In this document: piece by piece, positions 24,501 through 40,841 of the stretch | Layout of the letters: each line of letters begins with the position of its first letter | How positions within the stretch are numbered: the stretch's first letter is position 1 | Source of the DNA: Octopus bimaculoides | Taxonomy: Eukaryota | Assembly: GCF_001194135.2 (NCBI RefSeq) | Contig: NC_068987.1 | Location: forward strand, 65,197,242-65,261,241 | DNA length: 64,000 nt | Reading direction: 5' to 3' | Notes under the pieces: generated by a model | What the model saw: only the letters and a program-made list of their open reading frames with translations | Database searches by the model: none | Told to the model about the DNA's origin: nothing | Position numbers and translations under genes: made by a program

Positions 24501-26099
24501 CTTACCAATAAATATTCAATAATTAACTGAGATAACTTAAATAACTTGATATAATTTGGGTCAATTATTTTATTGTCCTGTAAGAAAGAAGGTAGAAATA
24601 ATTATATTAGATAGTGGTACAGGGTAGAAATGTGGTGTGTGGATAGTTAAACATTCTGGCAATCCCTCCTCCCTACAAGTACCAACATTTCTCTCCGAGT
24701 ACTAATCTGTAATAATCTACACTGAGCATTAACCCAACTGGCCTTAGTCAGTCATTTTTATCCAACCCAATCTAGGAAAGTTTTGGAAGACTATGGGCAC
24801 AACACTGACTTCTCAGAGTAATAAAACAAAAAAATATGTTTAGATACTGACATAAGATCATATGTTCAGACCTTGTTGTACCTGCCCAAAGGACAGCACT
24901 ATGTTTTGAATACTTCTCTTGTTTCAGTTAATGCATTTAGTGTATGGAGACAAATCCCCAGTAAATATAACACTAGATTCCATGTTATATATACAACAAC
25001 CATCTGACATACCACAGTATAATAAGGTAGGATAATTAATCTTGACTCAGCAAAGGCTTCCAACAGAGATCATCATAATGTTGTGTTAAAAAATACATCA
25101 AATATAAATCAATAGAAAACTATGGCATTAGATCGTGTATTTCCTAGTAAACAGGGGTTATGATGTCTCAAAACAATACTTTAAACACGTCACCGAGTAG
25201 AGCTATTAAGTTAAACAACATTGGCCGGAAATAGAAGTATTCTATGTTTAATCTGATGCTGTTCCATTTCTATTGCCCTACTGCCCCTAACTGGTAAAAT
25301 ATTGGTTTCGCCCATAAATACAAAATCACAAATTTTAAAGAATGAATATAGTAGATTACATCAACTTCAATAGTTGACTGGTATTTACTTTATCAACCAT
25401 GTATGGTTGAAAAGGTGAATTTTAAATCAGACTAAAAAGAAATGTAACTAAATACTGCACAACATTTTGTCTGTTGCACTAACAATTCTGCCATTTTCTG
25501 TCCTCTTAATTTGAATATTGGTTTCAAGCTTTGGCACAAGACTAACAACTTCAGGGGATGGGAATAAGTCAATTATATCAACCTCAATGTCCAACTGGTA
25601 CTTAATATATCTTCTCTAAAAGAATGAAAGATAAAATGAACCTTGGTGGAATTTGAACTCAAAATGTAAAGGCAGACAAATGGTGCTAAGCATTTGCCCA
25701 GCATTCTAATGATCCAGCCAGCTTGTTGCCTTTACAACAAATAAAATATCAACAATTGTCCAAGATAGAATTAAAAAAAATTCTTTTAGCCCTAATGAGA
25801 ACACCCATCCATTCTGATCAGATGAGATGTCTCAGGAAAAAGAACGAAAAAACAAAATGAAGTAAAAGCATTAGAATCGGTTATAAGCAAAATGAAAGGC
25901 TTACCACTTCTTGTTCTATATCACAAAATGTTATGCTGTAGATATTCTCCTGGAGTGTGTTGTAATCAAATGTCTGATACATTTGCTCTATGTTTAGTGC
26001 AGCTATCTTTCGCCAGTCCACATGTTCTGTTTTGCGCCGAGTGGCTAGCACTGCGTAACTTCCAGCTGTTGGAGTCATCTTGTCAATGGTGATGTGCAT
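164..26099 (-). CDS. DZIP1: DZIP1/Iguana-family C2H2 zinc-finger, coiled-coil ciliary basal-body protein; spliced gene, 3' end beyond the left edge (~650 codons in window)
   Basis: The spliced translation gives the Dzip-like N-terminal domain (VDWRKIAALNIEQ...TLQENIYSITFC / DPNYIKLFKLSQLIIEYLL / NSQEYL / KESHKRKKLL). A C-x2-C-x12-H-x4-H finger (CPYCPKAFLHHSYLQTHLTKRH), coiled coils and the LLTEKLEKIG motif follow. This matches the recalled human DZIP1 layout. DZIP1 versus DZIP1L orthology is not resolved from sequence alone. Confidence 0.92.
765..1145 (-). mobile_element. tRNA-derived SINE (family D); related copy at ~31430-31750 (+)
   Basis: tRNA-like head (GCAATGACCCAGTGGCTAGGGCAGCAGACTC...TCGATTCCC). 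The body is shared with the 31.4-kb copy (GCTGAATCTCCC...GCAGGCTGTTC...CAACTGGAAC). Confidence 0.75.
1508..1585 (-). CDS. DZIP1: DZIP1 exon STKAISTKSYQDKISILKKDRVNKAK
   Basis: ctctcatttacag|...AAG|gtatac; 78 nt, phase 0/0; aligns with human DIRGISSDQL...ER. Confidence 0.87.
3374..3500 (-). CDS. DZIP1: DZIP1 exon (R)SYNELMQKMYKQVSENPKILKEMKSEMADLLTEKLEKIGFPA
   Basis: tttctttcttag|...|gtatgt; 127 nt, phase 2/0; similar to human LMEKLETLGINA. Confidence 0.9.
4345..4762 (-). mobile_element. SINE family A doublet (Meta-domain-like tRNA SINE). Other copies: 7595-7812(-), 9015-9438(+, 2), 10590-10755(-), 11365-11588(-), 18645-18832(+), 23135-23575(-, 2), 25515-25722(-), 27125-27297(-), 28680-29180(-, 3), 34945-35148(-), 37985-38500(+, 3), 53375-53760(+, 3)
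   Basis: Recurrent consensus GCTGGCAGAA..GTTAGCA..GAAATGCTTAGC..TTCTGAGTTCAAATT..GCCTTTCATCCTTTCGGGGTCGATAAA..AGTACCAG with an (ATT)n tail. The core resembles the MetaSINE domain as I recall it. Confidence 0.85.
4822..5208. mobile_element. MITE-like element with ~90-bp inverted repeats
   Basis: 4822-4911 versus the reverse complement of 5119-5208, roughly 80% identical by eye. Confidence 0.65.
5645..6620 (+). mobile_element. RTE LINE 3' fragment: ORF terminus plus ~850-bp CT-rich 3'UTR, leading into the family-B tail
   Basis: 5645-5745 encodes a terminus like DLRKLDFMEEMTMDRDVW..VLEKT, homologous to the end of the 47.7-kb LINE ORF. Confidence 0.6.
6620..7015 (+). mobile_element. RTE 3'-tail repeat (family B). 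Other copies near 1735(-), 2600, 2945, 5490, 9985(-), 14345, 18390, 21400, 33470, 43550(-), 50650, 55865(-) and 63430
   Basis: Same sequence as the tail of the 46455-48290 LINE: GTGGTTGG..TTAGGAAGGGCATCCAGC...CCAACCCATGCCAGCATGGAAA..GACGTTAAA(TGA)n. Confidence 0.85.
7932..8146. mobile_element. piggyBac-type MITE with TTAA target-site duplication; a second copy in the opposite orientation lies at ~24263-24478
   Basis: TTAA|CCGTTTAGCATT ... AATGCTAAAGGG|TTAA. Confidence 0.85.
8275..8383 (-). CDS. DZIP1: Candidate DZIP1 bridging exon (phase 1 in, phase 2 out); acceptor ambiguous
   Basis: A phase-1-in, phase-2-out exon is required between 8577 and 3500. The donor AAG|gtaaaa at 8275 gives phase 2, and acceptors at 8383, 8413 and 8452 are all in frame. 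The peptide is not recognisably DZIP1-like. Confidence 0.45.
8577..8814 (-). CDS. DZIP1: DZIP1 acidic exon TLPLEKKASVD...IEEDDNNDE(n)...RTND
   Basis: tatttttgatag|...G|gtaaag; 238 nt, phase 0/1; poly-Glu tract. Confidence 0.83.
10793..11345 (+). repeat. Interspersed repeat family E (~550 bp, (AAT)n tail). Other copies: 11655-11870(-), 27880-28275(+)
   Basis: Three copies align by eye (GGCTCTCATGGCTTCT...GATTTGCTTGTCAGTTG...TGAGCATG). Confidence 0.75.
12358..12474 (-). CDS. DZIP1: DZIP1 exon KSQEKIQQNKKKAPTVTKAAKRKLNFFQKSEKSAISKKQ
   Basis: tgatcttag|...CAG|gtatgt; 117 nt, open, phase 0/0. Confidence 0.8.
12610..13120. mobile_element. RTE/RTE-X LINE 3' fragment with a 5' inversion
   Basis: 12810->12610 (-) encodes GCETLT..HIKQLEQFHTR..LLKAQLCWTGHIIRV. 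12820->13075 (+) continues with QGRPKLRYKD..RSTWR..YHCDI..GLRSHMH. Confidence 0.75.
13255..13610. repeat. ~38-bp degenerate minisatellite, about 9 units
   Basis: Consensus CTGTGGTACCTACTTACAGTTAGGTGGACTGTACCTCA. Confidence 0.8.
13742..13849 (-). CDS. DZIP1: DZIP1 exon IQNLEKNFTSHLKEQEKMWHLQMEELKKKHEEEMLQ
   Basis: tttgtgtttag|...CAG|gtcagt; 108 nt, phase 0/0; coiled-coil with W, as in the family. Confidence 0.88.
14481..14857 (+). mobile_element. Penelope-like element fragment encoding a GIY-YIG endonuclease
   Basis: CGIC...FTYTSENLIYALTCSGCQEQYIGQT...RMGLHRSQI...HINVC...FITKY, the typical PLE C-terminus; open frame. Confidence 0.88.
15083..15327 (-). CDS. DZIP1: DZIP1 exon (S)VKQTNLGAIRDDDDEV...EKLLQKK
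   Basis: ttattttgcag|...AAG|gtaaca; 245 nt, phase 1/0; contains an xLGxIxDD-type motif. Confidence 0.87.
16092..16560. repeat. ~19-bp degenerate minisatellite, about 24 units
   Basis: Consensus ACAGCTTGTAATTAACTGG. Confidence 0.8.
16594..16678 (-). CDS. DZIP1: DZIP1 exon KEIANMWKLFHERDLQYEANLKELMKKF
   Basis: aattttccag|...|gtaagt; 85 nt, phase 0/1; the phase fits the next exon. Confidence 0.85.
16790..17980 (+). mobile_element. Highly decayed retroelement (probably Penelope RT/EN) with a ~150-bp internal direct duplication (16930-17080 and 17825-17975)
   Basis: The duplication is seen directly. The YHPNMKL remnant resembles the PLE FHPxLKFT motif, so the family assignment is tentative. Confidence 0.45.
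18856..19104 (-). CDS. DZIP1: DZIP1 zinc-finger exon (CPYCPKAFLHHSYLQTHLTKRH...RDTQKH)
   Basis: tttctttgcag|TGT...CAT|gtaaat; 249 nt, phase 0/0; C2H2 finger. Confidence 0.93.
19940..20182 (-). mobile_element. tRNA-derived SINE with V-domain-like core
   Basis: Head GCATGGCTTAGTGGTTAGG..., then GATGGACTAGTGTCCTATC-like core. A similar head fragment lies at ~55540-55605 (+). Confidence 0.55.
20588..20725 (-). CDS. DZIP1: DZIP1 exon KENELKQQIEKLQKELSKVSKESHKRKKLLMAQQQLIHGVPGNYHK
   Basis: cctatag|...|gtactt; 138 nt, phase 0/0; similar to human KEECKRRKKMISTQQ. Confidence 0.92.
21856..21921 (-). CDS. DZIP1: DZIP1 exon NSQEYLTHQLGSVEERIKKHEQ
   Basis: ttgttccag|...|gtaaga; 66 nt, phase 0/0; similar to human HSQEFLTSQL. 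Confidence 0.92.
24506..24577 (-). CDS. DZIP1: DZIP1 exon DNKIIDPNYIKLFKLSQLIIEYLL
   Basis: ttcttacag|...|gtaagt; 72 nt, phase 0/0; matches the conserved DPxxxKLxxLxQxxIEYLL motif. Confidence 0.93.
24720..25270 (+). mobile_element. Decayed CR1/L2-like RT remnant
   Basis: Traces of PISL..KVLE, LDSAKA...H and GVPQG..LG motifs in the expected order, with many frameshifts. Confidence 0.4.
25905..26099 (-). CDS. DZIP1: DZIP1 first coding exon (MHITIDKMTPT...DIEQEV); the exon begins at acceptor 26174, so 75 nt are 5'UTR
   Basis: Acceptor ttcttttctttttag|26174; in-frame TAG two codons before ATG 26099 (alternative ATG at 26078); donor GTG|gtaag at 25905; 195 nt, phase 0. Confidence 0.9.
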
Positions 26100-40774: not shown

Positions 40775-40841
40775 ATGTTAGGCTCCAGTGATATACCACC
40801 TCTTGTTGCTCTGCTGTTTTCGATCACACTGAAACTGTCGG
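40775..40841 (+). CDS. DNAJC3: DNAJC3 exon 1 (signal peptide [23 protein letters not shown])
   Basis: ATG at 40775, hydrophobic core, G|gtaagt donor, phase 1, which fits exon 2; lies in the CpG-rich region. Confidence 0.85.

Follow-up and report, generated by a model that had tools for sequence, protein, structure and literature searches.

The divergent DZIP1 and DNAJC3 genes of Octopus bimaculoides are probably an ancient pair of neighbours

We analysed a 64-kb stretch of the Octopus bimaculoides genome (64,000 nucleotides of contig NC_068987.1; henceforth referred to as 'the window', with all octopus positions counted from its first letter) in which DZIP1, a cilium-assembly gene on the minus strand, and DNAJC3, which encodes a co-chaperone of the endoplasmic reticulum stress response and occupies the plus strand, lie head-to-head and diverge from each other. 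The window has a GC content of 0.366, a CpG observed/expected ratio (o/e) of 0.26 and seven gaps of N; its DZIP1 exons match O. bimaculoides XP_014775442.1 with 100% identity and its DNAJC3 matches the UniRef entry A0A0L8H4S7_OCTBM. An earlier reading of the same letters made without database searches (henceforth referred to as the 'sequence-only reading') had held that the two genes diverge with no other gene between them, and this was confirmed: DZIP1 and DNAJC3 are present and divergent exactly where that reading had placed them, positions 25905 and 40841 being the 3' ends of the first coding exons of DZIP1 and DNAJC3, respectively. The two ATG codons are ~14.7 kb apart, and the interval between them (26100-40774) holds mariner debris only.

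We mapped the exons of DZIP1 by reading splice sites and by tblastn with the O. vulgaris protein CAI9725630.1 (911 aa) and the O. bimaculoides proteins XP_014775442.1 and XP_014775445.1. In the window the coding sequence comprises the ATG exon and 12 further exons, arranged as follows (here and below, a caret marks an exon boundary):

162..26099, minus strand: DZIP1, residues 1 to ~618 of ~911, running past the left window edge
25905-26099, minus strand: DZIP1 ATG exon, with the ATG at 26099 and the donor GTG^GTAAGC after 25905
24506-24577, 21856-21921 and 20588-20725, minus strand: DZIP1 coding exons 2-4, GT-AG splice sites read
18856-19104, minus strand: DZIP1 coding exon 5, carrying a C2H2 finger
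~16592-16678, ~15080-15328, ~13736-13849 and ~12352-12474, minus strand: DZIP1 coding exons 6-9
~8570-8814, minus strand: acidic coding exon of DZIP1
~3374-3502, ~1502-1585 and ~162-290, minus strand: last DZIP1 exons in the window

Since the O. vulgaris protein has 911 residues, of which ~618 are accounted for here, the octopus gene leaves the window at its left edge. When exons 1-5 were spliced, their product matched the Pfam family Dzip-like_N (PF13815) with E=2e-28 over model positions 5-117/118, and the exon-1 peptide alone matched it with 9.5e-11. The single C2H2 finger, CPYCPKAFLHHSYLQTHLTKRH, follows the coiled coil and aligns with the finger of relatives; matches to zinc-finger structures in the PDB were weak, as expected for a single finger. 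An exhaustive HMMER search returned 912 relatives, and those at the top are labelled DZIP1-like or DZIP1L-like and come from Octopus vulgaris, O. sinensis, O. bimaculoides, the scallop Ylistrum, Haliotis, Littorina and Lingula; XP_014775442.1 itself is labelled 'zinc finger protein DZIP1L-like'. Because the split between DZIP1 and DZIP1L is vertebrate-specific, we take the octopus gene to be the single pre-duplication copy, which would be the pro-orthologue of both vertebrate DZIP1 and DZIP1L. The O. bimaculoides annotation divides the gene between XP_014775442.1 (460 aa), whose C-terminus runs on spuriously into intron sequence (9734-9877), and XP_014775445.1 (401 aa), and the NCBI models begin at the second methionine (26078) and not at the ATG at 26099. 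The acidic exon (~8570-8814, minus strand) encodes a run of ~45 Glu/Asp residues that is interrupted differently in O. vulgaris, which marks it as a fast-changing low-complexity tract.

The part of DNAJC3 that falls in the window is made up as follows:

40775-40841, plus strand: DNAJC3 exon 1, with the start codon and a signal-peptide-like N-terminus; donor G^GTAAGT after 40841
40842..55408, plus strand: DNAJC3 intron 1, 14.5 kb, with transposon debris
55409-55510, 57599-57723, 59007-59081, 60655-60798 and 63167-63348, plus strand: DNAJC3 exons 2-6, encoding TPR repeats

Exon 1 encodes a hydrophobic N-terminus whose first 22 residues (40775-40840) are identical to the start of A0A0L8H4S7_OCTBM, and it splices to 55409 after the polypyrimidine acceptor CTTTACAG^ (55401-55408), exactly as in that entry. 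Pfam found TPR families in the product. Among solved structures the best match was human DNAJC3 (2y4t, E=7.7e-73; 3ieg, E=1.5e-69), and the next natural TPR protein, OGT, followed at ~1e-25, or about fifty orders of magnitude worse. The gene continues past the right window edge after exon 6 (63348) and the J domain lies outside the window; a J domain is present in the neighbouring gene model of the clam Tegillarca and in the Lingula orthologue, both of which are described below. As with DZIP1, the O. bimaculoides annotation splits DNAJC3 into two models, the N-terminal one of which stops at 232 aa.

A tblastn search with a human DNAJC3 query, which the alignment to 2y4t validated, placed the first exon at 55.3 kb. 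The frame of exon 2 is indeed open upstream, through the acceptor, to an in-frame ATG at 55333, and it encodes there a hydrophobic pseudo-signal-peptide that might conceivably serve as a first exon in its own right. If translation did start at 55333, exon 1 at 40775-40841 would be an annotation artefact and the interval between the genes would be ~29 kb; in favour of this are the frame that stays open through the acceptor at 55408 and the loose alignment, in the tblastn search, of the hydrophobic extension with the human signal-peptide region. We rejected this start as intron read-through, given the upstream exon in the UniRef model, and regard it as very improbable: exon 1 has a perfect donor, the acceptor at 55401-55408 is of the textbook polypyrimidine kind, an equivalent exon for the putative signal peptide stands by itself at this position in the clam and in Lingula, and the CpG domain and stress-response element considered below sit at 40.7 kb, whereas CpG o/e at 55 kb is 0.14. 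Even with a start at 55333 the two genes would still adjoin and diverge, with nothing but transposon debris in the intervening DNA.

The remaining features of the interval and of the introns are mobile-element fragments and assembly gaps:

32228-32717, plus strand: mariner/Mos1-type fragment, N-terminal helix-turn-helix (HTH) part, broken frames (Pfam HTH_48, E=7e-18)
33881-34660, minus strand: second mariner-type transposase fragment, DDE part, with stops and frameshifts (Transposase_1, E=8e-18)
37295-37509: assembly gap in AT-rich (20% GC) non-coding DNA
39931-40091: assembly gap, followed by (TA)25 at 40092-40142; ~680 bp upstream of the DNAJC3 ATG
21085-21399: assembly gap in a DZIP1 intron, costing no residues
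44181-44680, minus strand: BED/hAT-like open reading frame pieces in DNAJC3 intron 1
46636-47701, plus strand: long interspersed nuclear element (LINE) reverse transcriptase with a PHD finger in DNAJC3 intron 1 (RVT_1, E=1.2e-6; PHD, 4.8e-5)
51544-51826, minus strand: LINE-like fragment in DNAJC3 intron 1
49027-49324 and 50189-50254: assembly gaps in DNAJC3 intron 1, no residues lost
61113-61756 and 62030-62151: assembly gaps in a DNAJC3 intron, no residues lost

Apart from the two mariner fragments, the interval between DZIP1 and DNAJC3 consists of simple repeats, and we found no Rfam family, no tRNA and no other open reading frame with a recognisable family within 26100-40774. No exon abuts the gaps at 37295-37509 and 39931-40091 and no reading frame runs across either, so the gene models are unaffected by them. 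The two gaps do limit the claim that nothing intervenes between DZIP1 and DNAJC3, and a small hidden exon or the true start site of DZIP1 may lie in or near the gap at 39931-40091. Within DNAJC3 intron 1, the RVT_1 match lies just under the Pfam cut-off, and the BED/hAT-like and second LINE-like reading frames had no Pfam support and are transposon-like by appearance only. Repeat units resembling short interspersed nuclear elements occur at ~20809-21050, ~22018-22400, ~45664-46033 and elsewhere, in the introns of both genes and in the interval; they yield similar pseudo-peptides (…GTEPKTIWLGSKFL… / …AVGLNSKPCGWKA…) and often stand beside (CA)n/(TA)n runs and gaps.

The same arrangement was found in two further lophotrochozoans. 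In the bivalve Tegillarca granosa (CM056602.1) a Dzip-like_N gene (minus strand) and DNAJC3 (plus strand) are adjacent, carry consecutive locus tags (KUTeg_012172 and KUTeg_012171) and have annotated ranges that overlap by 235 bp; tblastn placed the conserved first exon of DZIP1 at 8585-8433 (minus strand) of the locus, the signal-peptide exon of DNAJC3 at 10001 (plus strand) and its first TPR exon at 11328 (plus strand). In the brachiopod Lingula anatina (LFEI02000287.1) a 906-aa DZIP1 on the plus strand, with PF13815 and PF25977, diverges from a 491-aa TPR+DnaJ gene on the minus strand, and the ATG codons of the two genes are 892 bp apart. The Lingula TPR+DnaJ gene is the DNAJC3 orthologue, with the octopus exon boundaries; these boundaries are common to octopus, Tegillarca and Lingula, and the putative signal peptide has a separate exon in all three. 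In human, we take DZIP1 to be a minus-strand gene and DNAJC3 a plus-strand gene ~32 kb away, and the vertebrate paralogue DZIP1L is presumably located beside CLDN18.

Within cephalopods, Supplementary Data 1 of Schmidbaur et al. 2022 (PMC9023564) contains a block, numbered 4447 in Euprymna, 4446 in Callistoctopus and 14419 in O. bimaculoides, that in Euprymna spans 184 kb and holds TPR-DnaJ genes, a Dzip1-like gene and a WD40 gene, and whose O. bimaculoides counterpart is KQ419223:267503-347551 with three consecutive models. A single Euprymna block thus holds both genes (PMC9023564), and the three counterparts show that linkage spans squid and octopuses. The block is filed as cephalopod-specific because the method requires at least three co-occurring genes (PMC9023564) and is blind to a core of two, and the 'three genes' in O. 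bimaculoides may partly be split models of two. Among mammals, a gene list in a mouse quantitative trait locus paper reads 'Abcc4, Cldn10, Dzip1, Dnajc3 and Uggt2' and a sheep copy-number variation paper gives the order 'CLDN10, DZIP1, (LOC), DNAJC3, UGGT2, HS6ST3'; in chicken, a genome-wide association study has DZIP1 and DNAJC3 within one megabase. At the human locus the long non-coding RNA DNAJC3-AS1 (DNAJC3-DT) is divergent from DNAJC3 and lies head-to-head with it over its promoter.

The loci that we read directly in support of adjacency and orientation are all from protostomes (octopus, Tegillarca and Lingula), and the vertebrate orientation is one that we presume. Both points would be compatible with a chance, convergent re-association of DZIP1 and DNAJC3 in lophotrochozoans and vertebrates, as would the four vertebrate loci that we fetched (Naja, Engystomops, Danionella and Coryphaenoides), in which a DNAJC3-like gene adjoins a claudin and DZIP1 is absent. 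However, these four genes appear to be paralogous, the Naja protein being 54% identical to human DNAJC3 and 60-66% identical to the teleost copies; such identities suggest a vertebrate DNAJC3 paralogue absent from mammals, and the four loci are consequently no test of the DZIP1-DNAJC3 pair. In the fishes and the frog the claudin is upstream of the DNAJC3-like gene and shares its strand, whereas the cobra has it downstream and on the other strand; this neighbour echoes the mammalian CLDN10-DZIP1-DNAJC3 order and would fit an ancestral CLDN-DZIP1-DNAJC3 segment from which one DZIP1 copy was lost after duplication. In addition, we estimate the probability that the same neighbour in the same orientation arises by chance in two shuffled genomes at ~1e-4 to 1e-3 per lineage pair. 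Overall, we give re-association the slimmest chance of all the explanations that we weighed.

Since the same divergent pair in a cephalopod, a bivalve and a brachiopod, together with the mammalian gene order, is very unlikely to have arisen twice, we conclude with considerable confidence that the pair dates back at least to the lophotrochozoan ancestor, and probably to the bilaterian one, and that it was lost in insects and some other lineages. The sequence-only reading had held that the pair has stayed linked since the protostome-deuterostome split. What stands of this is that the association is old and not a chance re-association, as seen in Tegillarca, Lingula and the coleoids and in the mouse and sheep gene order; what qualifies it is that in two insects the adjacency was not found within 10 kb. 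That reading also took retention to imply a functional constraint, for instance shared cis-regulation; retention by itself does not warrant this step.

Several other loci with one or the other gene came up in our searches. Word-indexed protein searches with DZIP1 gave 1 and 4 relatives on short contigs that were of no use for synteny. The ENA contig ctg118783l of ERZ21867824 (205,852 bp) carries DZIP1 exons 1-2, which match the octopus exon at 75% (protein) and 79% (DNA) identity, and a mariner HTH reading frame upstream of them, and is evidently host DNA of a cephalopod-like mollusc; no DNAJC3 was found within 10 kb upstream of its DZIP1, and nothing outside the exon aligns to the window. On OMLO01005506.1, an animal contig from a metagenome, a gene with a UBA-like N-terminus (UBX-protein-like; 6368-6616, minus strand) lies head-to-head with DZIP1 (8788-9551, plus strand). 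In Megaselia abdita (CM108651.1, 10001-10699) the N-terminal half of DNAJC3 recurs as a copy of 232 aa that lacks introns, ~6.4 kb downstream of a full-length TPR+DnaJ gene; this copy looks like a retrocopy or partial duplicate.

The following signals were found in the octopus interval and around its two edges, where ERSE stands for endoplasmic reticulum (ER) stress element and UPR for unfolded-protein response:

37001..43000: CpG-undepleted domain, the only one in the 64-kb window; contains DNAJC3 exon 1
40698-40716, plus strand: ERSE-like site CCAATGGCAGAAAAACACG, one mismatch from CCAAT-N9-CCACG; its end lies 58 nt upstream of the DNAJC3 ATG
26100..26176, minus strand: putative 5' untranslated part of the DZIP1 ATG exon, with a strong acceptor tttcttttctttttag^g at ~26176
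39463..39830, minus strand: candidate non-coding first exon or start region of DZIP1, CpG-dense; ends at the donor-like AAAAAG^GTAACC, last base 39462/39463
39546-39559: palindrome GTTACCACGTTAAC, one mismatch from an RFX X-box and containing a CCACGT (UPR-element-like) core; in the CpG domain, on the DZIP1 side

In 1-kb windows across 37-43 kb, CpG o/e was 1.31, 0.38, 1.42, 1.10, 0.77 and 0.66, with a peak at 38.8-41.7 kb on a finer scale. Elsewhere it was 0.04-0.39 nearly everywhere and at most 0.60 in all other kilobases, the DZIP1 ATG exon being at 0.39. This pattern suggests that 37-43 kb is an unmethylated promoter region common to both genes. Tegillarca likewise has a single CpG peak between the genes (o/e 1.1-1.5 vs 0.30), and in Lingula the enrichment between the genes is weaker than in Tegillarca. 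CpG depletion in octopus is unbroken from the body of DZIP1 across 27-37 kb, which would fit a transcribed DZIP1 intron.

The ERSE has the consensus CCAAT-N9-CCACG, and DNAJC3, also known as P58IPK, is a standard marker of the UPR (PMC2821749). A perfect ERSE on the DNAJC3 strand precedes the ATG by 58 nt in Lingula (9168-9186 of the locus, minus strand) and by 108 nt in Tegillarca (9874-9892 of the locus), so that CCAAT-N9-CC/ACACG is present in the DZIP1-DNAJC3 interval of all three species and stands at the same distance from the ATG, 58 nt, in octopus and Lingula. With up to one mismatch allowed, over whole loci and both strands, 1.48, 0.77 and 0.35 matches are expected for octopus, Lingula and Tegillarca, respectively; against these expectations, a sense-strand copy within 110 nt of the DNAJC3 ATG in each of the three is far more than chance would give. 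The identical distance in octopus and brachiopod suggests that UPR control of DNAJC3 may predate the split between molluscs and brachiopods.

On the DZIP1 side, the strong acceptor before the ATG exon suggests an upstream non-coding first exon, and a second acceptor candidate, ctgttttag^, is found at ~26141. Lingula offers a parallel in a donor-like G^GTAAGT at ~9516, ~480 bp upstream of the DZIP1 ATG, with an acceptor directly before the ATG. The RFX X-box was considered as a ciliary motif of DZIP1 and discarded: octopus has one near-match (39546) and the clam and Lingula intervals have none. X-box-like matches in the window number 5 vs 3.8 expected, a weak signal that we did not use as evidence.

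Three signals together, namely the single CpG domain, the conserved ERSE and the acceptor that precedes the ATG exon of DZIP1, hint at one promoter region for both genes. On balance, we modestly favour as the best overall explanation an ancestral divergent pair that has been kept by a shared compact promoter region, in octopus as well; taken on its own, the shared compact promoter region is the mechanism that these sequence signals support best, and we put it forward tentatively. In the ancestral state, both genes would have started within ~1 kb of each other, in one unmethylated promoter region bearing CCAAT and an ERSE, as in the brachiopod and the clam. Octopus would have kept the core of this arrangement, with DNAJC3 exon 1 in the only CpG-undepleted domain and the ERSE-like element 58 nt upstream, and its DZIP1 would start with a short non-coding exon at ~39.5-39.8 kb on the minus strand, in the same CpG domain, spliced over a transposon-inflated intron of ~13 kb to the ATG exon at 26.1 kb. 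A breakpoint that separated the genes would then have to hit the small shared promoter and would damage at least one of them, even in a heavily rearranged coleoid genome. Three of these steps, namely the non-coding exon of DZIP1, promoter sharing and selection as the cause of retention, are ones that we infer, and co-regulation of DZIP1 and DNAJC3 would likewise be deduced from DNA sequence.

A number of observations weigh against this explanation. The coding starts in octopus are 14.7 kb apart and the human genes ~32 kb, both far over the usual 1-kb limit for bidirectional pairs, the putative non-coding exon of DZIP1 and its donor at 39462 are hypothetical, and the assembly gap at 39931-40091 falls in the middle of the proposed promoter. 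The mismatch in the octopus ERSE lies in its ATF6-binding half (ACACG), and the octopus, clam and Lingula intervals yielded neither a conserved X-box nor any other motif specific to DZIP1. If the genes have separate promoters in octopus or human, the argument for constraint would be weakened. The adjacency is also absent from some genomes: in Ladona fulva and Ranatra chinensis other genes or nothing lie within 10 kb upstream of DNAJC3, with no DZIP1 by tblastn, and the upstream flank of DNAJC3 in a compact eukaryote gave the same result. Finally, 32 DZIP1-bearing loci on metagenome contigs (JGI) had no DNAJC3 in any flank, but these are mostly short contigs and we regard them as uninformative. 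The absence from insects and other animals indicates that the DZIP1-DNAJC3 pair can be broken.

This breakage, and the freedom of the octopus interval to grow to 14.7 kb by transposon insertion, would be accounted for if the adjacency were ancestral and had simply survived neutrally, because the original intergenic target was tiny (<1 kb), with no co-regulation and with separate promoters now in octopus and mammals. The genes of cephalopod-specific blocks are moreover not co-expressed (Schmidbaur et al. 2022, PMC9023564). On the other hand, the pair outlived the coleoid reshuffling and is kept in three other lineages, with its orientation unchanged throughout; a single CpG domain also appears to serve both genes, and an acceptor precedes the DZIP1 ATG exon. 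We therefore consider neutral survival somewhat unlikely, while ranking it as the main rival, with a regulatory block, convergence and a misannotated exon all less likely.

Under the regulatory-block alternative, the pair would be held together as a bystander, by enhancers that serve one gene, or a third gene, and are located within the other gene or past it. Deep microsynteny has been explained chiefly in this way (Irimia et al. 2012, PMC3514665), and the large introns here could hold such elements. Yet such blocks are anchored by a kind of developmental regulator to which neither DZIP1 nor DNAJC3 belongs, the comparison with ERZ21867824 ctg118783l revealed no conserved non-coding sequence outside the exon, and the genes are compact in Lingula and in the clam. 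This alternative thus appears improbable.

The explanation by a shared promoter region can also be drawn further than we would take it. From the bilaterian ancestor onwards, a single ERSE-bearing bidirectional promoter might have served DNAJC3 as well as DZIP1, coupling the transcription of a basal-body/ciliogenesis gene to the UPR, and human DNAJC3-AS1/DT and the 13-kb octopus 'interval' might be remnants or extensions of an ancestral first exon and intron of DZIP1; we consider this extended version clearly unlikely. If DZIP1 does share the promoter, there would be a link between ciliogenesis and ER proteostasis. The pair would in any case be a small, clean case of gene order that survived the coleoid reshuffling, with a testable reason, namely one promoter region for two genes. 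An older two-gene core inside a 'cephalopod-specific' block also calls for caution with synteny methods whose minimum is three genes and whose outcome depends on unsplit models.

These results alter no major question: conserved divergent pairs are a familiar class (Irimia et al. 2012), any genome browser shows the vertebrate neighbourhood and the cephalopod linkage is contained in a published table. In our literature search, outside which the main catalogue of such pairs (Irimia 2012) fell, we found no paper naming DZIP1-DNAJC3 as conserved across phyla and none combining DZIP1, DNAJC3 and synteny; the supplements of Robert 2022 contain neither DZIP1 nor DNAJC3. What is added here is the conserved position of the ERSE and the caution on 'cephalopod-specific' blocks.

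The locus can be compared with several known systems. As in divergent pairs with a shared promoter, the two genes are separated by a compact, CCAAT-containing, CpG-rich interval in less expanded genomes such as those of the clam and Lingula, whereas octopus falls outside the <1-kb definition unless the proposed non-coding exon of DZIP1 is real. In the ERSE-driven promoters of ER chaperones (GRP78, GRP94 and calreticulin; PMC2821749) there is a counterpart to the perfect sense ERSE before DNAJC3 in Lingula and Tegillarca; the octopus copy deviates from them in the CCACG half, and the elements before DNAJC3 are predicted ones. The mammalian CLDN10-DZIP1-DNAJC3-UGGT2 segment of human 13q32 and mouse chromosome 14 has the same orthologous neighbours, and the human DNAJC3 promoter is bidirectionally transcribed; it differs in its spacing, which we presume to be ~32 kb, and in the second copy, DZIP1L, that vertebrates have in place of the single gene in octopus. 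The cephalopod block 4447/4446/14419 contains the same Dzip1-like and TPR-DnaJ genes, but the DZIP1-DNAJC3 core is older, as it is shared with a clam and a brachiopod. Overall, the pair resembles the deeply conserved microsyntenic pairs of metazoans (Irimia et al. 2012, PMC3514665) in that two unrelated genes adjoin with the same relative orientation in several phyla, namely Mollusca, Brachiopoda and, by published gene order, Vertebrata.

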